From contig OY740807.1 in the NCBI GenBank assembly GCA_963514005.1, positions 1,860,001-1,924,000 on the forward strand: a stretch of DNA of 64,000 nt, written 5' to 3'. Shown piece after piece: positions 9,292 to 54,167 of this stretch. The DNA comes from Raja brachyura. Its lineage: Eukaryota. Below the pieces are notes generated by a model. The model saw only the letters and a list, made by a program, of their open reading frames with translations, was not told the DNA's origin and ran no database searches. The position numbers and the translations under genes are program-made. Position 1 is the stretch's first letter. Each line of letters starts with the position of its first letter.

Positions 9292-9544
9292 TATTGTTGG
9301 ACGTGAAGGGAATTGATGCTCTGGGTTTCGTGCGGGAGGGTAGCACTCGGGTGAATGATCAGCCACCTTCACGTTGAACAAGGGCGAGCCGAGGCGCAAG
9401 CTCGGGGGAGTTGACCCCTCACCCACGTGGTTGCATCCCAACACACTGCTGATTCCTGGATCGTCTTCGGCCTAACCCGAAACAAATCTCTCGCCATATC
9501 ACCCTAGGCCTTTGGCCCTGGGATCGGGTAACATTCGTCACAGA

Positions 9545-14979: not shown

Positions 14980-15580
14980 ACATTTTTAATGTACATCCAT
15001 TTTGTATTATGTGGGGGGGGGGGGGGGGGGACCATTTTTTTAAATCTCTTTCCTCGACGGAGATGCGACTTTTTCAACGTATCTCGTCTGCACAACGGCT
15101 TTAACATCGCGGAGCTGGGAGAAAATTAGGGATAAGTTATTTGACTTCCATCACAGTGGGGAATGTGAGGTCGCCGGAAAAACAAGATGGACTTGCTGCC
15201 TGCACTGGTGAGGACTCGGAGGCAGTGCCGTGAGCTCAGTGATCTCGGTGTTTTGCAGGGACATGGCTCCGTGAGGACATCCCGGAGTCTGCGAGTGTGG
15301 ACGGGACGGTTCGGGCGGACAGGGACTGCAGAGAGAGTGACTGCGGTCGGTACAACTCTGGTCACATCACGGTGAAGGAGCGCGTGTGTGGCCCGGACAT
15401 TGAACCGGGACATTGAACCGGCTTTGGGTCTCCGCTTATGCTGTGGCCCTGGGGATTCTCACACGCCGCTGTGGTGGCTGTTTAAGTCGATGTGTAATTT
15501 GTATGTGGTTATGTTTTTTTGAATGATCGTTGGCAAATCAAATTCCTGGTATGTTTACATACTTGGCTAATAAATTAATT
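14980..15580 (+). repeat. Unclassified interspersed repeat with LINE-like 3' tail
   Basis: Poly-G, a CpG-rich body, a short tandem (ggacattgaaccg)x2 and a tail ending atacttggctaataaa. Family not determined. Confidence 0.4.
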
Positions 15581-15599
15581 TCAATAAGAATTAAACGAC

Positions 15600-15803
15600 A
15601 TTTAATTTGCCGTCAGCAGATTCTAAAGCGCCGGAAATCAATCTCCGCCCACACAGGTTTCATGGCCCCTCCCACTCATTACATTCCGGTTAATAAAGAC
15701 AACCAGAGGCTCTGGTTTCCAGACACTGGACCCCGAGCGGCTCCCGGACTTTGCAGTACAACACGAGTGGTTCTGAAGATTTGGTGTTCGCCTGTCCGGA
15801 AGA
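15600..15803 (+). promoter_or_regulatory. Putative IgL proximal promoter
   Basis: Unique sequence between an upstream repeat and the ATG. Contains TTAATAAA (15690), Ets cores CCGGAAAT (15631) and CCGGAAG (15796), GC box CTCCGCCC (15643) and degenerate octamer ATTTGCCG (15605). Confidence 0.5.
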
Positions 15804-15852
15804 ATGGCCCCAGCGCTGCACCTCCTGTGGCCTCTGCTGCTGCTCCCACCAG
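15804..15852 (+). CDS. IgL: Ig light chain exon 1, leader peptide (MAPALHLLWPLLLLPP-G)
   Basis: ATG at 15804 in agaATGG context, 16 hydrophobic codons plus 1 nt, then donor G|GTGAGA at 15853. This is the classic phase-1 split leader. Too short for the ORF track. Confidence 0.92.
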
Positions 15853-15984
15853 GTGAGACTCGGGTTGGTTCACGACTGTTTATCTGCAACGAGGCTCGTT
15901 AAAATCTCCACCATCGTCGGTGCTCTACGCGTGTCTAGCCTTCTGTGGGCTCCAGATCACCCAGTCGTTTCATCTGTCCATAAG

Positions 15985-16135
15985 TGATGGGCCATTCAAT
16001 CTCTATCTGATCTATCTCTTTCTCCTAACCCCATTCTCCTGCCTTCTCCCCATAACCCGTCACCCGTACGAAACACGGATCTATCTATCTCTGCCTTAGC
16101 TTGGCCTAAACCGCCGTGTGTGGCAATTAATTCGC
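15985..16135 (-). mobile_element. Decayed CR1 3' tail in the leader-V intron
   Basis: ctcctgccttctccccataaccc and tctatctatctctgcctta motifs match other CR1 tails. Confidence 0.6.
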
Positions 16136-16230
16136 CTCTTGAACTAAAGAAACTCGTCGTCATCTCATTCTAAAGGAATGTCCATTAGTTCTGAGGCTTT
16201 GATTAAGGTTTTCATTGTGTTTTGTTGAAG

Positions 16231-16590
16231 GATTCCTGGCGATCCCAGTCCTGAATCAGACCCCAACGTCCGGACCTGTCTCCGCGGCACAAACCGGCCG
16301 CTTAGAGTGTCGGATGCAGAACGGAAATGTTGCAAGTTACAGTGTATATTGGTATCGACAGCGTCCCGGGGAGAGACCAGAGCGGGTGATAACATATAGC
16401 ACGGGTAATGATATCTACCGTGGCAGTGGGTTCACAGACCGGTTCCAACCGTCCAGAGATACCTCCGCCAACAGCTACATCCTGACCATCGGCACCCTGG
16501 AGCCCAGAGACGCCGCCGTCTACTACTGTGCAGTGTGGGAAAACAACGTGGGATACACCTTCAGCCCTGGGAGTATCCTGGATATAAAGA
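16231..16590 (+). CDS. IgL: Ig light chain exon 2, germline-joined V-J (type I / NS5 / sigma-cart class)
   Basis: Acceptor tttgttgaag| at 16230. Reads (G)FLA-IPVLNQTP...LEC...YWYRQRPG...DRF...YILTI...DAAVYYCAVWENNVGYTFSPGSILDIK with both V-set Cys and the Trp. J is contiguous with V with no heptamer/nonamer. Donor A|GTAAGT at 16591. Confidence 0.96.
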
Positions 16591-17095
16591 GTAAGTGACT
16601 CCCTCGTTCTGTTCCCATGAATCCCCTTTGCAGTCGTTCTCATTCCCCAGTCCGGGAACGCTCTGGAAAAACTTGCTCTGCCTCTACTCGGCGCGGGAGG
16701 CCATTCAGCGGTCGGGAGAGTATTCCCGCCTGCGGGGAACGCTAGCCCGCGGGGATTCCTGCATCGTTAACACAAGTCGTAGTTTGCGACAATCAAACGC
16801 GTTAATGTTGGGGAAACAAGGAAGACAATTTGCAGGCATTCTGATGAATGACATTGAGGGAAATACTGTGCAGCGGGTTGGGCAAGTCGGTTAGAGAGTG
16901 TAGCGGGAAAGGACGTGTTGGTGCGGGCTCGGGGTGTAATCCGGGATGAACCGGTCGCTTCCTCGTCTCTTCACCTCTCAATGGTTTGCGGAGCCGCGCT
17001 GCGTCCCGCCGCTCCCCTTGCGTCACTTGACAGGGAGTGTTGGATATCCGGAGGCCTCTCCAGTACCGGTACTTCCCGCCATAACTCCTTAAAGT

Positions 17096-17405
17096 GGGTG
17101 CGGCACATTGGCTCAATGGTAGATATGTTGCCTCACTGCGCCAGATTCCCCGGTTCGAGCCTGACCTCGGGTGCTGTCTGTGTGGGGTTTGCAAGTTTTC
17201 CCTGTGACCCCCTGCGATTGTTCCGGTTCCCCCCCACATCCCAAAGACGTGCGGGTTTGGAGGTTAATTGCCCGACGGTGAATTGTCCCGAGTGTACGGG
17301 GAGTGGGTGAGAAGCGGGATATCATAGAACTAGTGTGAACGGGTGATAATGGTCAGTGTGGACTCGGTGGGCCGAAGGGCCAGTTTCCATGCTGTGTCTC
17401 CTAAA
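17096..17405 (+). mobile_element. HE1-like SINE in the J-C intron
   Basis: A box TGGCTCAATGG, B box GGTTCGAGCC and 3' end gtggactcggtgggccgaagggcc. Confidence 0.85.
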
Positions 17406-17696
17406 ATAGCTACATTCGCAAATTCACATTCAAGCGAATTCCAGAGCTGGGGAATTATTGAACCCCGCAATGAAATCGTCTCGACAGAGCGACGTAAAGC
17501 CGAGCGGCGCCAGGTGGAGGGACGGGGCCGGGGTGATGTTACTCAAGTGGGTTTAGAGCTCTCGGCCTGGTGTTGGCTGTAAGGCGACAGCTGCGATTAA
17601 CCTGGGCCAATCTTCATTAGCCGGCTTAGACCGGCTGGGTTCAATAGCCGCGTCCTTTTCCTCGACTTTCACGAATTGTTCGTGTCATCGACGGTC

Positions 17697-17900
17697 TTTT
17701 AGTTTTAGAGACAGCCCGAAAACAGGCCCTTCGGCCACCGAGTCCACACCGACCAAAGATCCCCGCAAACGAACACTCCCCTACAAACACTAGGGACTAA
17801 ACGTACAAACTCCGTACAGACATGCACCTGTGTTTAGGATCCGACCCGGCTCTCTGGCGCTGTAAGACAGTTGCTCCAGCGCTGCACCACCGCGCCGCCC
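17697..17900 (-). mobile_element. HE1-like SINE with internal deletion in the J-C intron
   Basis: Antisense gggcggcgcggtggtgcagcg 5' end and CR1-derived tail. Confidence 0.85.
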
Positions 17901-18017
17901 AGTCACTGACACTTTCCGTGGCCGAGTTCGTTTCTCTCGCGTTGGGGTCAGTGTGTGGCGCTGCCGACGGTCTCCATCAACTAATGTTTCTCTTCTCCTC
18001 CGCCTCTCCACACACAG

Positions 18018-18346
18018 GTAGCGAGTCTCGGAAGCCCTCACTTCTCCTGCTCCCTCCGTCTCCGGATGAAACTGGCACGGGCTCGGCCACACTCAGCTGC
18101 CTGGTGAGCGGCTTTAAGCCGGGCTTCGTGGCGCTGCGCTGGGCCGTGGACGGCGTGGAGACGGAGAGCGGGGTGACGTCGGGCGCCGTGTCCCCGGACG
18201 CCGAACAGACGTACAGGCTGAGCAGTTACCTGCGGGTCCCCGCCGCCGCATGGGACAAGGGCTCCAGCTATTCCTGCAGCGTCGGACATTGCTCGCTCAG
18301 CTCGCCTCTACGACACACCGTCTCGTCGTCCACCTGCGCGAACTGA
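18018..18346 (+). CDS. IgL: Ig light chain exon 3, constant C1-set domain
   Basis: Polypyrimidine tract and cacacag| acceptor at 18017, phase 1 matching the J donor. SESRKPSLLLLPPS...ATLSCLVSGFKPG...W...YRLSSYLRVPAAAW...YSCSV.H...SSTCAN* has the C-terminal interchain Cys and resembles shark type I C domains as I recall them. Spliced CDS 49+360+329 = 738 nt, 245 aa. Confidence 0.96.
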
Positions 18347-18612
18347 GTTCGTGCCATTGGCATCGGCTGCCAATTCTCTGCTATGTTTAACACAGAGAGA
18401 GCTTCACTGTGGTCTGCCGCCACCTTGAGCAATGTAACCTATAGCAATGTCCACTTCTGGGAACAACACGAATATGTAATTATCTCAGAGATCAGTGCGA
18501 ATTTCTTTGTTGATTTGTCCTCTGTGTTTTACTGCCTCTGTCTGTAGAGTGGGGGGAGATCCCATGTAGACAGTAACCGTGTTGTGATTGGATCTGGTGT
18601 ATCTCGGCTTTT

Positions 18613-18618
18613 AATAAA
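18613..18618 (+). terminator. Polyadenylation signal of the IgL gene
   Basis: AATAAA 267 nt after the C-exon stop, followed by a GT/T-rich stretch. Confidence 0.75.
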
Positions 18619-19054
18619 AATGAAAAACTGCGGTGTGATTCCATTGGTCTATTTTCACGCGGTTCCTCGCAGTACATTGAGGGGTTTGGCGCAAAGACCT
18701 GGCGATCAGGAGCCGCCTTACACACAACTACAACCAGTTCCGCTCAAACGGCTCATTCTGCTCCTCTTGATCAATAGCACTCTGTGTCCCGCACCGACCT
18801 CTTCCCCCCTCTCCCACCTGTCGCCGTCTGCCGGTCCCTCTATTCTGCGTCCCGACTCCCCTACCTCCATCGCAACCTCACGTGTCTATCCTGCTCCCCA
18901 TTTCCCACCTACCCCCCCCCCCCCCCACCCCGCCACCGCTCCCTCTGGATGCCAGATGCACAATCTCGCCGCTCTTTGGTCAAATTTGGGGGTGGGGACA
19001 CACACACATGAAACACGGTGCTGGACTCTTCCGCTCTGAACCATCCCTGGAACA

Positions 19055-19300
19055 CGTGGGTAGGTGAAAACTCGGGTAGAGACCCTTCTTCAGATTTAGC
19101 TCCGAACCTAAACGCTGAAGAAGGGTCTCGACCCGAAACGTCGCCTATCTGCTTCGCTCCGTAGATGCTGCTGCACCCGCTGAGTTTCTCCAGCCTTTTG
19201 TGTACCCCCGTCACCGATCCATGTTCTCCATGCATGCTATCCGACCCATTACCAATGCCTTTCCATGGTAAACCAGCATCTGCAGTTGCTTGTTTGCAGT
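19055..19300. mobile_element. Short Penelope terminal-repeat derivative (inverted pair) with hammerhead-like motif
   Basis: gacccttcttcag (minus strand) faces ctgaagaagggtctcgacccgaaacgtc (plus strand, 19115-19142). Confidence 0.7.
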
Positions 19301-21974: not shown

Positions 21975-24102
21975 AAAATAGAAACATAGAAACATAGAAA
22001 TTAGGTGCAGGAGTAGGCCATTCGGCCTTTTGATCCAGCACCGCCATTCAATATGATCATGGCTGATCATCCAACTCAGTATCCCGTACCTGCCTTCTGT
22101 CCATACCCTCTGATCCCCTTAGCCACAAGGGCCACATCTAACTCCCTTTTAAATATAGCCAATGAACTGGCCTCAACTACCCTCTGTGGCAGAGAGTTCC
22201 AGAGACCCACCACTCTCTGTGTGAAAAAAGTCCTTCTCATCTCGGTCCAAAAGGATTTCCCCCTTATCCTTAAGCTGTGGCCCCTTGTCCTGGACCTCCC
22301 CAACATCGGGAACAATCTTCCTGCATCTAGCCTGTCCAACCCCTTAAGAATTTTGTAAGTTTCTATAAGATCCCCTCTCAATCTCCTAAATTCTAGAGAG
22401 TATAAACTGAGTTTATGCAGTCTTTGTTCATAAGACAGTCCTGACATCCCAGGAATCAGTCTGGTGAACCTTCTCTGCACTCCCTCTAAGGCAATAATGT
22501 CCTTCCTCAGATTTGGAGACCAGAACTGTACGCAATACTCCAGGGGTGGTCTCACCAAGACCCTATACAACTGAAGTAGAACCTCCCTGCTCTTATACTC
22601 AAATCCTTTTGCTATGAAAGCTAACATGCCATTTGCTTTCTTCACTGCCTGCTGCACCTGCATGCCTACTTTCAATGACTGGTGTACCATGACACCCAGG
22701 TCGCGCTGCATCTCCCCTTTTCCTAATCGGCCTCCATTTAGATAATAGTCTGTTTTCATATTTTTGCCACCAAAGTGGATAACCTCACATTTATCCACAT
22801 TATACTGCATCTGCCAAACATTTGCCCACTCACCCAGCCTATCCAAGTCACCTTGCAGTCTCCTAGCATCCTCCTCACAGCTAACACTGCCCCCCAGCTT
22901 AGTGTCATCTGCAAACTTGGAGATATTGCCTTCAATTCCCTCATCCAGATCATTAATGTATATTGTAAATAGCTGGGGTCCCAGCACTGAGCCTTGCGGT
23001 ACCCCACTAGTCACTGCCTGCCATTGTGAAAATGACCCGTTTACTCCTACTCTTTGCTTCCTGTTTGCCAGCCAGTTCTCTATCCACATCAATACTGAAC
23101 TCCCAATGCCGTATGCTTTAAGTTTATATACTAATCTCTTATGTGGGACCTTGTCGAAAGCCTTCTGGAAGTCCAGATACACCACATCCACTGGTTCTCC
23201 CCTATCCATGCTACTAGTTACATCCTCAAAAAATTCCACAAGATTCGTCAGACATGATTTACCTTTCGTAAATCCATGCTGACTTTGTCCAATGATTTCA
23301 CCACTTTCCAAATGTGCTGCTATCCCATCTTTAATAACTGACTCCAGCAGTTTCCCCACTACCGATGTTAGACTAACTGGTCTGCAATTCCCCGGTTACT
23401 CTCTGCCCCCCTTCTTAAAAAGAGGGGTTACGTTTGCTACCCGCCCATCCTCAGGAACTACTCCAGATTCTAAAGAGTTTTGAAAGATTATCACTAATGC
23501 ATCCACTATTTCCGGAGCTACTTCCTTAAGTACTCTGGGATGCAGCCTATCTGGCCCTGGGGATTTATTGGCCTTTAATCCATTCAATTTACCCAACACC
23601 ACTTCCCGACTAACCTGGATTTCACTCAAGTCCTCCTTTGACCCGCGGTCCCCTGCTATTTCCGGCAGATTATTTATGTCTTCCTTAGTGAAGACGGAAC
23701 CAAAGTAGTTATTCAATTGTTCCGCCATATCCTTGTTCCCCATGATCAACTCACCTGTTTCTGACTGCAAGGGACCTACATTTGTTTTAACTAATCTCTT
23801 TCTCTTCACATATCTATAAAACTTTTGCAGTCAGTTTTTATGTTCCCTGCCAGTTTTCTTTCATAATCTATTTTTCCTTTCCTAATCAAGCCCTTTGTCC
23901 TCCTCTGCTGGTCTCTGAATTTCTCCCAGTCCTCTGGTATGCTGCTTTTTCTGGCTACTTTGTACGCATCATCCTTTGCTTTGATACTATCCCTGATTTC
24001 CCTTGTTATCCACGGATGCACTACCTTCCCTGATCTATTCTTTTGCCAAACTGGGAGGAACAATTTTTGTAGTTCATCCATGCAGTCTTTAAATGTCTTC
24101 CA
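21975..24102 (-). mobile_element. Young CR1-type LINE, 5'-truncated (427-aa open RT + C-terminus)
   Basis: ORF 22076-23359 with FADD. Frameshifted upstream pieces. (catagaaa)n tail. Confidence 0.95.
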
Positions 24103-26386: not shown

Positions 26387-26525
26387 NNNNNNNNNNNNNN
26401 NNNNNNNNNNNNNNNNNNNNNNNNNNNNNNNNNNNNNNNNNNNNNNNNNNNNNNNNNNNNNNNNNNNNNNNNNNNNNNNNNNNNNNNNNNNNNNNNNNNN
26501 NNNNNNNNNNNNNNNNNNNNNNNNN
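26387..26525. other. 139-nt N block (copy 1)
   Basis: Run of N. Confidence 0.99.
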
Positions 26526-28898: not shown

Positions 28899-31026
28899 AA
28901 AATAGAAACATAGAAACATAGAAATTAGGTGCAGGAGTAGGCCATTCGGCCCTTTGATCCAGCACCGCCATTCAATATGATCATGGCTGATCATCCAACT
29001 CAGTATCCCGTACCTGCCTTCTGTCCATACCCTCTGATCCCCTTAGCCACAAGGGCCACATCTAACTCCCTTTTAAATATAGCCAATGAACTGGCCTCAA
29101 CTACCCTCTGTGGCAGAGAGTTCCAGAGACCCACCACTCTCTGTGTGAAAAAAGTCCTTCTCATCTCGGTCCAAAAGGATTTCCCCCTTATCCTTAAGCT
29201 GTGACCCCTTGTCCTGGACCTCCCCAACATCGGGAACAATCTTCCTGCATCTAGCCTGTCCAACCCCTTAAGAATTTTGTAAGTTTCTATAAGATCCCCT
29301 CTCAATCTCCTAAATTCTAGAGAGTATAAACTGAGTTTATGCAGTCTTTGTTCATAAGACAGTCCTGACATCCCAGGAATCAGTCTGGTGAACCTTCTCT
29401 GCACTCCCTCTAAGGCAATAATGTCCTTCCTCAGATTTGGAGACCAGAACTGTACGCAATACTCCAGGGGTGGTCTCACCAAGACCCTATACAACTGAAG
29501 TAGAACCTCCCTGCTCTTATACTCAAATCCTTTTGCTATGAAAGCTAACATGCCATTTGCTTTCTTCACTGCCTGCTGCACCTGCATGCCTACTTTCAAT
29601 GACTGGTGTACCATGACACCCAGGTCGCGCTGCATCTCCCCTTTTCCTAATCGGCCTCCATTTAGATAATAGTCTGTTTTCATATTTTTGCCACCAAAGT
29701 GGATAACCTCACATTTATCCACATTATACTGCATCTGCCAAACATTTGCCCACTCACCCAGCCTATCCAAGTCACCTTGCAGTCTCCTAGCATCCTCCTC
29801 ACAGCTAACACTGCCCCCCAGCTTAGTGTCATCTGCAAACTTGGAGATATTGCCTTCAATTCCCTCATCCAGATCATTAATGTATATTGTAAATAGCTGG
29901 GGTCCCAGCACTGAGCCTTGCGGTACCCCACTAGTCACTGCCTGCCATTGTGAAAACGACCCGTTTACTCCTACTCTTTGCTTCCTGTTTGCCAGCCAGT
30001 TCTCTATCCACATCAATACTGAACTCCCAATGCCGTATGCTTTAAGTTTATATACTAATCTCTTATGTGGGACCTTGTCGAAAGCCTTCTGGAAGTCCAG
30101 ATACACCACATCCACTGGTTCTCCCCTATCCATGCTACTAGTTACATCCTCGAAAAATTCCACAAGATTCGTCAGACATGATTTACCTTTCATAAATCCG
30201 TGCTGACTTTGTCCAATGATTTCACCACTTTCCAAATGTGCTGCTATCCCATCTTTAATAACTGACTCCAGCAGTTTCCCCACTACCGATGTTAGACTAA
30301 CTGGTCTGCAATTCCCCGGTTACTCTCTCCCCCCCTTCTTAAAAAGAGGGGTTACGTTTGCTACCCGCCCATCCTCAGGAACTACTCCAGATTCTAAAGA
30401 GTTTTGAAAGATTATCACTAATGCATCCACTATTTCCGGAGCTACTTCCTTAAGTACTCTGGGATGCAGCCTATCTGGCCCTGGGGATTTATTGGCCTTT
30501 AATCCATTCAATTTACCCAACACCACTTCCCGACTAACCTGGATTTCACTCAAGTCCTCCTTTGACCCGCGGTCCCCTGCTATTTCCGGCAGATTATTTA
30601 TGTCTTCCTTAGTGAAGACGGAACCAAAGTAGTTATTCAATTGTTCCGCCATATCCTTGTTCCCCATGATCAACTCACCTGTTTCTGACTGCAAGGGACC
30701 TACATTTGTTTTAACTAATCTCTTTCTCTTCACATATCTATAAAACTTTTGCAGTCAGTTTTTATGTTCCCTGCCAGTTTTCTTTCATAATCTATTTTTC
30801 CTTTCCTAATCAAGCCCTTTGTCCTCCTCTGCTGGTCTCTGAATTTCTCCCAGTCCTCTGGTATGCTGCTTTTTCTGGCTACTTTGTACGCATCATCCTT
30901 TGCTTTGATACTATCCCTGATTTCCCTTGTTATCCACGGATGCACTACCTTCCCTGATCTATTCTTTTGCCAAACTGGGAGGAACAATTTTTGTAGTTCA
31001 TCCATGCAGTCTTTAAATGTCTTCCA
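28899..31026 (-). mobile_element. CR1-type LINE, duplicated copy
   Basis: ORF 29000-30283. Confidence 0.95.
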
Positions 31027-33309: not shown

Positions 33310-33448
33310 NNNNNNNNNNNNNNNNNNNNNNNNNNNNNNNNNNNNNNNNNNNNNNNNNNNNNNNNNNNNNNNNNNNNNNNNNNNNNNNNNNNNNNNNNNN
33401 NNNNNNNNNNNNNNNNNNNNNNNNNNNNNNNNNNNNNNNNNNNNNNNN
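33310..33448. other. 139-nt N block (copy 2)
   Basis: Run of N with the same length and flanks as copy 1. Confidence 0.99.
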
Positions 33449-50321: not shown

Positions 50322-53300
50322 ATGTCGGGCTGGAGGAGTCAAGAAGGCTACCCCAAAAAAAGCCACCCTAATAATAAAATGCAAGATATGAATGTAAGGA
50401 TTGGGGGTGATGGAATCACCTTCTGTAGTTGGAATGTTAAGGGAATTAATGAACCAGTTAAAAGGGGAAAGGTGTTAGCTCAGTTGAATAGATTGAAATC
50501 AGATGTTACGTTTCTTCAGGAGACACATCTTAAAAAAGATGCTCAATATAGATTAACAGCTAAGTGGATTTCAAAGGTGTATCACTCATCATTTATACAT
50601 AAATCTAGAGGAGTTGCAATAATTATTCGTAAAGGCATACCTTTTAAACCTAGTTCTATAATAGAGGATAAGGAGGGTAGATATTTAATAATTACAGGGG
50701 AATTACAGTCAAAAAAAGTAATTTTTATGAATATATATGCAGCAAATTTCGATAACCCATTATTTTTCAAGAAAATATTTAATAATATCCCTATATCCAC
50801 TCAATATAATTTAATAATTGGGGGTGATTTAAATTGTACTTTAGATAATTATTTAGATAGATCTTCCACGAAAAGGAAAGCTCTTTCTAAGTCAAGTAAA
50901 TTTATAAACTCTTTTATTACGACATCGAATGTTAAGGATATTTGGAGATTGGATAATCCAACTGGACGTGAATATTCATTTTTCTCACCGGTATTTGGAA
51001 CCTATTCAAGGATAGATTATTTTTTAGTCGATTCAAAATTACTTCCCTTCACGTATGATGCAAAATACCACAATATTATTATCTCAGATCATGCCCCGCT
51101 AACATTCAAGATAAAATTAAAAGATATAGTTAATAAAACTAACACTTGGAGATTTAACCCACAAATATTGAAGGACAAAGGCAGTTGTAATTATGTGGAG
51201 GAACAGATTAAATTATTTTTCGAAACTAATGATAAACCTGAGATTTCCCCATTATTATTATGGGATACATTTAAAGCATTTATGCGTGGTGCAATAATAT
51301 CAGCACAAGCATATTTTAATAAAGAAAATCGAAAGACGGAGCAAAAGTTAGAAAAGGAGATAAAACGATTAGATAGTGAAAATATAAGACATCCTTCTAA
51401 AGAGTTAGTTAATAAAATTGCAATATTAAAATATAGATTAAATAAAATATATTCTGACCAAGTTATTAAACTTTTTCAAAAAACCAAACAAGTACATTTT
51501 GAATTTGGAGATAAGCCACAAAATTTATTAGCACGACAACTCAGAAAATTAGACGATGAAAAAACTATACATAGCATTAGATCTATGCAGGGAAACATAC
51601 TGACTATACCAAAGGATATTAATGACACATTTTTACAATATTATCAAAATCTTTATTCATCAAAATCAACAGGGCAAACAGATGAAATGGAAATGTTTCT
51701 AGACAAATGTCATATTAATAGGCTAGATCTGGAAAGTAGGCAATTGTTAAATGCTGAAATATCAGTAAGAGATATTGAAGAATCAATTGGTTCGTTAAAA
51801 AATGGAAAAACCGCGGGCCCTGATGGCCTGAGTGCAGAATTTTATAAAAAATTTAATGATCTAATCTCACCAAGATTACAGATAGTGTATAGATATGCAT
51901 ATGAACTAGGAAAATTACCAGAATCCTTAAATGAATCTACAATTACACTCATCCCGAAGTTAGACAAGGATCTGGAAGATCCTGGATCATATAGAGCGAT
52001 TGCTCTTTTAAATACTGACCAAAAAATATTAACTAAAGTACTATCTCAGAGGCTAAGTTTAGTGATTTCTAAAATAATACATCACGATCAAACAGGTTTT
52101 ATTCCAAAACGTTATTCATCACACAATCTTAGGCGCCTGTTTAATATCATATATTCGAAAAGAAAAAGAGACACAGAATTAGCAGTTATATCGTTGGATG
52201 CAGAAAAAGCATTCGATCAGGTGGAATGGTCATATTTATTTAATATAATGGAAAAGTTTCAATTGGGGGATGGATTCTGTAAATGGGTAAGAATATTATA
52301 CTCTAATCCTACTGCAAGAATTTTAACTAATCAAATACTATCACCTAAATTTAAACTATTTAGGGGATGCAGACAGGGATGTCCGTTATCCCCTTTATTA
52401 TTTGCCTTGGTCATAGAGCCTTTGGCTGAAAGAATTAGATCTGAACCTGAAATATATGGTTATAATACTGATACACCAATTAATAAAATATCTTTATATG
52501 CAGATGATGTTTTGATTTATATTACAAGACCGGAATGCAGTATTCCCAAGTTATTTAATGTTATAAATGAATTTAGCATATTTTCAGGATATAGGATTAA
52601 CTGGAATAAAAGTGAAATTATGCCTATAACTGGCATAAATATAAATATATTGCAACAATATCCATTAAAAATAGTCACAGATAAATTTAAATATTTAGGA
52701 ATCAATGTACCTAAATCGTTTAAATTATTAATTAAATCTAATTATCCTCAATTATTAGATAAACTTATAAAAAATATTTCATATTGGAAAACACTTCCTA
52801 TATCTATGGTTGGTAGAATTAATGCTATAAAAATGATTTTTTTACCACAATTGTTATATTTGTTTCAGGCTATTCCTTTTTTTCTCCCGAAATTTTTTAA
52901 AAAGAAAATTGATAATATTGTTAATAGTTTTATTTGGGACTATAAAAGTCATAGAATAAGTAAAAAACACTTATGTAAGTCTAAGATAAATGGAGGGTTA
53001 GCACTTCCAAATTTTTTATATTATTTCTGGGCAGTCCAGATTAAGAATATGAATTTTTGGTGGATAAATCTGGATAATGAACCAATGTGGTTAAAGATGG
53101 AAAAGGAAGACTGTTTACCTTTTAATATAGGCTCGATTCTTTTTGCCCCAAAGGAAGTACAAAAAAAGATTTATAGGGATAACCCTATAATTTATAATAA
53201 TAGGCGTATATGGAAACAGATAGTTAAGACTTTACATCTGGATAATCTATCTTTCAGGTTACCAATTAGGAATAACCCATTGTTTAAACCCTCAATATTA

Positions 53301-54167
53301 GATGCGGGGTTTAGACTCTGGGAGGATTTAGGAATTAAAAGGGTAGGACACCTTTATAGAAATGGAAATTTTTTATTATTTGAAGAGTTGCAAGATATTT
53401 TTGGATTGCCTTCACAACATTTGTTTAGATATTTACAAATTAGAGATTACATTAAATGTAATACACAAGATTATAAAAATAAAGAACCAGGCTTATTAGA
53501 TGGTTTGTTTAATTTACATCCAAATACGGAAAAGTTAATAGCTCATACATATAATATTATTCTGGATAAAGAGACCCCAATAACTGAAACATATCGCCAA
53601 GCATGGGAAAATGAAATTGGATTACCTATAACAAAAGAAATTTGGGAAGAAAGCTTACAGAGAATAAATCGGTGTTCTTTAAATGCTAGACATATATTGA
53701 TACAATTTAAAGTACTATATAGATTACATTATTCGAAAACCAAATTAAATAGTATTTTTCCCAATCTCTCCTCTATTTGTGATAAATGTAAGAATCTAGA
53801 AGCAAACTTAATACATAGTTTTGTAACATGCCCTAAGTTGAATTATTACTGGACAGAATTTTTTAAAGTAATTTCTGAAGTTCTTAAAGTTAAACTGGAC
53901 CCTGACCCAAAATTAATAATATTTGGAATTCCGGAATCAAGTTTGGTTTTGACAGTAAATCAAAGAAATTTCTTTGATTACTGTTTGATAATAGGGAAAA
54001 AAATCATATTGAAATTTTGGAAGGGAACATTATCCCCAACAATTAAAATGTGGACAGTAGAGATGCTGGAGACGTTATATTTGGAAAGAATTAGATTTGT
54101 CCTATTGGACAGGTATAATTCTTTTGAACTGATATGGTCTCCATATATACAGTATCTAGAGAAGTAG
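50322..54167 (+). CDS. L1 ORF2p (APE endonuclease + reverse transcriptase + CCHC)
   Basis: 1281 aa uninterrupted. SWNVKG, LQETH, GGDLN, SRIDY, SDH, SLDAEKAFD, GCRQGCPLSP, YADD and CDKC-X8-H-X4-C. Confidence 0.97.
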   Translation: MSGWRSQEGYPKKSHPNNKMQDMNVRIGGDGITFCSWNVKGINEPVKRGKVLAQLNRLKSDVTFLQETHLKKDAQYRLTAKWISKVYHSSFIHKSRGVAIIIRKGIPFKPSSIIEDKEGRYLIITGELQSKKVIFMNIYAANFDNPLFFKKIFNNIPISTQYNLIIGGDLNCTLDNYLDRSSTKRKALSKSSKFINSFITTSNVKDIWRLDNPTGREYSFFSPVFGTYSRIDYFLVDSKLLPFTYDAKYHNIIISDHAPLTFKIKLKDIVNKTNTWRFNPQILKDKGSCNYVEEQIKLFFETNDKPEISPLLLWDTFKAFMRGAIISAQAYFNKENRKTEQKLEKEIKRLDSENIRHPSKELVNKIAILKYRLNKIYSDQVIKLFQKTKQVHFEFGDKPQNLLARQLRKLDDEKTIHSIRSMQGNILTIPKDINDTFLQYYQNLYSSKSTGQTDEMEMFLDKCHINRLDLESRQLLNAEISVRDIEESIGSLKNGKTAGPDGLSAEFYKKFNDLISPRLQIVYRYAYELGKLPESLNESTITLIPKLDKDLEDPGSYRAIALLNTDQKILTKVLSQRLSLVISKIIHHDQTGFIPKRYSSHNLRRLFNIIYSKRKRDTELAVISLDAEKAFDQVEWSYLFNIMEKFQLGDGFCKWVRILYSNPTARILTNQILSPKFKLFRGCRQGCPLSPLLFALVIEPLAERIRSEPEIYGYNTDTPINKISLYADDVLIYITRPECSIPKLFNVINEFSIFSGYRINWNKSEIMPITGININILQQYPLKIVTDKFKYLGINVPKSFKLLIKSNYPQLLDKLIKNISYWKTLPISMVGRINAIKMIFLPQLLYLFQAIPFFLPKFFKKKIDNIVNSFIWDYKSHRISKKHLCKSKINGGLALPNFLYYFWAVQIKNMNFWWINLDNEPMWLKMEKEDCLPFNIGSILFAPKEVQKKIYRDNPIIYNNRRIWKQIVKTLHLDNLSFRLPIRNNPLFKPSILDAGFRLWEDLGIKRVGHLYRNGNFLLFEELQDIFGLPSQHLFRYLQIRDYIKCNTQDYKNKEPGLLDGLFNLHPNTEKLIAHTYNIILDKETPITETYRQAWENEIGLPITKEIWEESLQRINRCSLNARHILIQFKVLYRLHYSKTKLNSIFPNLSSICDKCKNLEANLIHSFVTCPKLNYYWTEFFKVISEVLKVKLDPDPKLIIFGIPESSLVLTVNQRNFFDYCLIIGKKIILKFWKGTLSPTIKMWTVEMLETLYLERIRFVLLDRYNSFELIWSPYIQYLEK

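Follow-up and report, generated by a model that had tools for sequence, protein, structure and literature searches.

Does the antibody light-chain gene in this stretch of Raja brachyura DNA carry variable (V) and joining (J) segments that were fused in the germline and are inherited as a single exon, or does the assembly mislead us about its state, its use or its class? The stretch analysed here, called the window throughout, is 64,000 nucleotides (nt) of contig OY740807.1, and at 15804-18618 on the forward strand it holds a three-exon immunoglobulin (Ig) light-chain minicluster, in which a leader exon (L), a VJ exon and a constant exon (C) follow one another within 2.8 kb. We conclude that this minicluster very probably belongs, as an intact gene, to the germline-joined light-chain family of skates known as type I or sigma-2. 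The layout below comes from a reading of 15300-19200 and a scripted check of the exon borders; the complementarity-determining regions (CDRs) were placed by the conserved Cys and Trp landmarks.

15804-15852, forward strand: leader exon of 49 nt, encoding the signal peptide (MAPALHLLWPLLLLPP) and the opening base of a Gly codon interrupted by the intron; ATG at 15804, GT donor at 15853 (cag/gtgaga)
15853-16230, forward strand: leader intron of 378 nt with gt...ag ends; very high-copy repeat at about 16007-16058
16231-16590, forward strand: fused V-J exon of 360 nt (end of the leader, framework regions FR1-FR3, CDR3, J); acceptor ttgaag/G, donor A/gtaagt
16320-16343, forward strand: CDR1, 8 amino acids (aa)
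16395-16415, forward strand: CDR2, 7 aa
16530-16559, forward strand: CDR3, AVWENNVGYT, 10 aa
16530-16590, forward strand: CDR3 and J part with the inherited V-J joint, bridged by public contigs and compared with other skate CDR3 and J sequences
16591-18017, forward strand: J-C intron of 1427 nt, gtaagt...cacag; high-copy repeats at about 17134-17395 and 17658-17919
18018-18346, forward strand: constant-domain exon (C1-set) of 329 nt including the TGA at 18344-18346; acceptor cacag/G, protein end ...SSSTCAN
18347-18618, forward strand: 3' untranslated region (UTR), ending in AATAAA at 18613-18618, presumably the poly(A) signal in use

Translated exon by exon, all three exons are open in their own frames and are bordered by canonical splice sites, and together they measure 738 nt, enough for 245 codons and a stop. 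Both introns have the phase that is typical of Ig genes, phase 1, and because they have been kept the gene is not a retrocopy. The VJ exon reads without a break as ...AVYYC AVWENNVGYT FSPGSILDIK, with FSPGSILDIK as its J motif. V and J thus lie in one exon in a gene that retains its introns, and no recombination signal sequence (RSS) accompanies them: a search for heptamer-spacer-nonamer arrangements found none in the 64-kb window, and its four bare CACAGTG heptamers, against 7.6 expected by chance, include none adjoining V or J. A tblastn search of the window with the V and C exons matched no Ig exon other than these two. An earlier note on this DNA, written from the letters alone, had described V and J fused in frame around the CDR3 AVWENNVGYT with no RSS or intervening DNA, canonical splice sites, a 245-aa product and the only recognisable Ig cluster in the window; each of these points held when set against the exon translations, the border and length checks, the RSS and heptamer searches and tblastn.

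The same note had called the gene germline-joined, and public sequence data bear this out. Four public runs (X1, X3, X6 and X11, four samples from four studies), which contain one third to three fifths of the sequence words searched, were compared with the window. From the 5' flank through both introns to beyond the putative poly(A) signal, the contigs stay colinear with the genome, and since the introns are covered and none is skipped, the contigs look like genomic DNA. The V-J joint is bridged without an insertion or deletion by contigs from three samples of three studies, X3 (16189-17181), X1 (16189-16588) and X11 (16332-16706); the X3 contig continues over the first 590 nt of the J-C intron and the X11 contig reaches 116 nt into it. 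At 10-15 bases of the V exon these bridging contigs depart from the window, and they may be alleles or the closest paralogue. Because the same joint stands on contigs from three independent samples, which run on into introns, the data support a V-J joint that belongs to inherited DNA, as opposed to a somatic rearrangement caught by the assembly. The literature is in accord. Germline-joined Ig clusters are known in cartilaginous fish, skate type I genes included, as the earlier note had stated, and a 1995 study of the little skate (Anderson et al., PMC2192082) found 89 or more type I clusters, all germline-joined and with no split gene among them. RAG activity in germ cells is the accepted origin of joined genes (PMC2193156), and by extension from that work the window's joint may have had the same origin.

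CDR3 lengths across paralogues, a comparison the earlier note had proposed, point the same way. Thirteen of 14 skate sequences (the window V exon and 13 others) share a 10-aa CDR3, and 13 of the 14 have the unusual J motif FSPG; this constancy fits one inherited joint. CDR3 is 8 aa long in all 20 of a second set, made up of 19 gene models from rays, mantas and sawfish and a clone from the spiny dogfish (Squalus), and ranges from 6 to 11 aa in other shark sequences. Because CDR3 length is fixed within lineages of this isotype, the comparison suggests that the ray genes are germline-joined too, possibly through a separate joining event. We also observed that in the ray, manta and sawfish models and the Squalus clone the 8-aa CDR3 comes with a J motif of FGPG or FGQG.

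The encoded protein follows the plan of an antibody light chain. Pfam recognises a V-set domain in the VJ exon (4e-16) and a C1-set domain in the C exon (1e-20), and a search of the PDB returns antibody chains. The chain consists of one V-set domain with its J strand and a single C1-set domain with a Cys near the C-terminus, and it has no membrane segment; with ...SSSTCAN followed directly by the stop, no further exon is needed after the C exon. The C domain has its Cys pair at C27 and C86 and the near-C-terminal Cys at C106. For the comparison with relatives, the V and C exons were each searched and aligned on their own. A word search with the V exon alone returned one protein, from a stingray, owing to a length rule, and the family was therefore gathered by word searches from two full-length relatives, this stingray protein and one from the thorny skate. 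Two members, AAA87170.1 and AAA87171.1, are deposited as 'type I immunoglobulin light chain [Leucoraja erinacea]'; the others that are named are CAA33375.1 from the horn shark, XP_051901911.1 from a sawfish and gene models from Leucoraja erinacea and Amblyraja radiata. The window V exon is 83-86% identical to skate type I chains and models (83% to AAA87170.1, 86% to XP_055487192.1), and the C exon 90-94% (90% to AAA87170.1, 94% to the thorny skate protein XP_032902325.1). In maximum-likelihood trees the V exon falls inside a 10-row clade of skate type I sequences (support 98/99) and the C exon inside an 11-row skate clade (support 99/96); within the V tree, the remaining skate sequences form a well-supported group that excludes the window V exon. 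Searches of the protein collection found neither the protein encoded in the window nor any protein more than 86% identical to it in V. The suggestion in the earlier note that the locus may be uncharacterised is plausible as far as the exact product goes, while the family itself has been thoroughly described.

Between the window and the matching public contigs, sequence divergence is strikingly uneven. Compared with the only contigs that match it, from three public samples, the VJ exon has 10-15 differences in 358 nt, most of which replace amino acids within or close to CDR1 and CDR2 (in X1, the 15 differences amount to ten replaced codons and two silent changes), whereas the next 592 nt of intron have two (Fisher p = 2e-5 for the X1 VJ exon against the intron). 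Relative to these contigs, the V exon shows about ten times the divergence of the adjacent intron. Three sets of changes affect runs of two to three adjacent bases (16232-3, 16393-4 and 16398-400), several of the VJ differences shift the sequence toward published little skate chains, and the 3' UTR holds a second patch, with ten differences in 18511-18621. The matching contigs could be alleles, the closest paralogue or carriers of conversion tracts. Should they turn out to be allelic forms of one cluster, the antibody genes that skates inherit would be changing from individual to individual, through conversion from paralogues or through mutation of a kind resembling the somatic hypermutation of sharks; it is, in our judgement, unlikely that the VJ exon of a joined cluster diversifies much faster in the germline than the cluster's introns. 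Hot-spot motifs of the form WRC/GYW occur at 0.19 per nt in the CDRs versus 0.10 in the frameworks, WRCY/RGYW motifs show no excess, and AGY serine codons occupy three of three CDR sites and four of eight framework sites; a hypermutation hot-spot signal in the V exon is only suggestive, and we do not rely on it. In the J-C intron, a 26-nt insertion after 16704 is present in X1 and X3 and absent from X6 and X11.

How might such a gene work? A single joining event in an ancestral germline would have fused V and J, which would since have been passed on as one exon. A B cell would then transcribe the cluster and splice leader to VJ to C with no recombination step, giving a secreted chain of 245 aa whose near-C-terminal Cys would bond to the heavy chain. 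Because no recombination is needed, this cluster would have one fixed junction and contribute no combinatorial or junctional diversity. The diversity of skate light chains would come instead from many paralogous clusters that differ mainly in their CDRs, probably supplemented by somatic hypermutation. According to the 1995 study (PMC2192082), skate genes of the joined kind are expressed and may be somatically mutated, and on the strength of that work the window cluster may be expected to be expressed and hypermutated as well. The earlier note had spoken of a fixed specificity. The fixed junction stands, but 'fixed specificity' is too strong a term for a family whose joined genes may be somatically mutated and which also draws diversity from its many clusters.

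Several observations weigh against the reading of an intact, typical family member. The run search returned no RNA run that contains the stretch searched, and no spliced contig or exon-exon joint was seen. The octamer ATTTGCAT is absent from the 300 nt upstream of the ATG, the nearest match with one mismatch lying at 15497, and octamer matches in the window are no commoner than chance. Codon 91 of the C exon (18290-18292) is TGC and encodes an extra, unpaired Cys. The public runs are of unrecorded kind and tissue, and the source animal of the window is not among them, since none matches its V exon exactly. The V and C trees, finally, were built from the gathered family, with no kappa, lambda or sigma outgroups.

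The first three of these observations also speak for another reading: a type I cluster joined in the germline but now out of use, one of the silent or decaying copies that occur in large Ig multigene families, and intact in appearance only. Such a copy would also suit the setting of the cluster, which sits amid fragments of long interspersed elements (LINEs) and beside a recent 6.9-kb tandem repeat, and the position of its V exon outside the well-supported group of other skate sequences. Against this, three open exon frames, canonical splice sites and the conserved Cys, Trp and J residues have all been kept, and where related copies differ from the gene, they do so mostly by amino-acid replacements within or near the CDRs rather than by frameshifts or stops. 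The extra Cys is private to the window: all four public samples have A at 18290 (AGC, Ser) and every relative has Ser, so Cys91 reflects an assembly error, or else an allele private to the assembled animal. We consider disuse unlikely, and continue to read the minicluster as an intact type I gene. As to expression of the family as a whole, contigs of about 1 kb encode full 246-aa relatives (P0061-P0067); because they are too short to hold introns, we take them for spliced transcripts, which would mean that the family is expressed.

A different light-chain isotype is very improbable. The gene could in principle be a lambda chain, or a type II chain, which in skates is also germline-joined, and two observations lean toward lambda: most relatives carry the automatic NCBI name 'lambda-1 light chain-like', and among single PDB domains the C exon matches a human lambda constant domain best. 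The family, however, joins the window gene at 83-94% identity to sequences deposited as type I, and includes, besides horn shark CAA33375.1, a sawfish protein that specialists label sigma-2: XP_051901911.1 is used as 'Prpe IgLS2' (sawfish IgL sigma-2) in PMC12227049. CDR lengths agree. In all species, sigma-2 has a CDR1 of 8 and a CDR2 of 7 residues (PMC5985310), and the window gene has the same 8/7, assuming that the published CDRs are likewise delimited by Cys/Trp landmarks. Kappa, lambda and sigma chains were absent from the word-search returns, as they share no words with the query. Identity to named type I chains, clade placement, the sawfish label and the CDR1/CDR2 lengths together support assigning the window gene to the skate type I isotype of antibody light chains (sigma-2, sigma-cart, NS5), in line with the earlier note's mention of skate type I light chains, and on these comparisons the automatic lambda name is misleading.

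That the assembly captured the somatic V-J rearrangement of a B-cell clone, the true germline locus being split, is hardly credible. Nothing speaks for it beyond the general possibility, which the earlier note had raised. A rare clone cannot yield an assembly consensus, and one clone's joint could not recur in independent animals, so the idea is contradicted by the indel-free joint shared by samples from different studies, on contigs of which X3 and X11 run into the J-C intron; there is also no RSS remnant, and all type I genes that have been examined in the little skate are joined (PMC2192082; PMC5192425). That the gene encodes an immune receptor of the non-rearranging VJ-C1 kind (NKp30-like, UrIg-like or similar) in place of an antibody chain is extremely improbable for a gene with a single C1-set exon, a stop after the C-terminal Cys, no membrane or cytoplasmic exon and near-identity to cloned light-chain cDNAs.

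The germline-joined type I cluster lies among LINE fragments, and about 1.4 kb past its putative poly(A) signal begins a 6.92-kb unit repeated in tandem, at least 99% alike between copies, from about 20022 to at least 34190. Features inside the units are as follows.

22076-23359 and 29000-30283, reverse strand: LINE reverse-transcriptase open reading frames (ORFs), one per tandem copy
26387-26525 and 33310-33448: masked runs of N, at the matching position in each unit

Elsewhere in the window, an open LINE ORF2 of 1281 aa, with apurinic/apyrimidinic endonuclease and reverse transcriptase, lies at 50322-54167 on the forward strand in AT-rich sequence (GC 0.28-0.31), and may belong to a young element. 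ARAGORN reports a tRNA-Ala(TGC)-like sequence at 9359-9433 on the reverse strand, perhaps a tRNA gene, perhaps the head of a short interspersed element; it was the only element found by the tRNA scan, and an Rfam scan found no RNA-family matches. Very high-copy repeats occur in both introns of the light-chain gene (16007-16058, 17134-17395 and 17658-17919) and downstream of it (19099-19200). The summed word depths of the high-copy repeats rise to millions in all four public runs and are huge in the bin 15955-16085, and because of these repeats many false 'joints' to 19115 appear.

The phenomenon of joined skate light-chain genes was described in 1995 and has been reviewed many times since; indeed, the skate type I family is where the absence of rearrangement was first shown. 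The window gene is one more ordinary member of this known family, a clean and complete example of a light chain without need for V-J recombination, and carries little weight beyond annotation. Its use is as a mapped, chromosome-placed member that could contribute to a full catalogue of the family, to dating the joining event and to a test for conversion between clusters.

Set against known systems, the window gene shares both isotype and germline joining with the sigma-2 genes of the nurse shark, coelacanth, gar and turtles (PMC5192425, PMC5985310). These animals have one to few such genes; the skate family is large and has yielded no split member. The type I chain of the horn shark (Heterodontus francisci, CAA33375.1) has the same isotype and domain plan, but its genes are split, carry RSSs and rearrange somatically (PMC5192425, PMC2193156), and its CDR3 of 10-11 aa comes with the J motif FGPG, where the window has 10 aa and FSPG. 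The thorny skate (Amblyraja radiata) gene model XP_032902325.1 provides the closest C domain, at 94% identity, and the same predicted length of 245 aa by exon arithmetic, but its V domain is only 84% identical to that of the window. From published family members such as the type I chains of the little skate (Leucoraja/Raja erinacea) the window gene differs only in detail: in its own CDR2 and neighbouring residues (ERVITYSTGNDIY), in a V domain that stands outside the well-supported skate group and in the extra Cys of its C domain, and its J ends in DIK where most end in EIN. With the little skate clusters it shares an L-VJ-C minicluster with a germline-joined V-J (PMC2192082), the J motif FSPG, a 10-aa CDR3, a constant region 90-92% and a V domain 81-83% identical to AAA87170.1 and AAA87171.1, and a leader that is almost identical to the type I leaders of both little and thorny skates.

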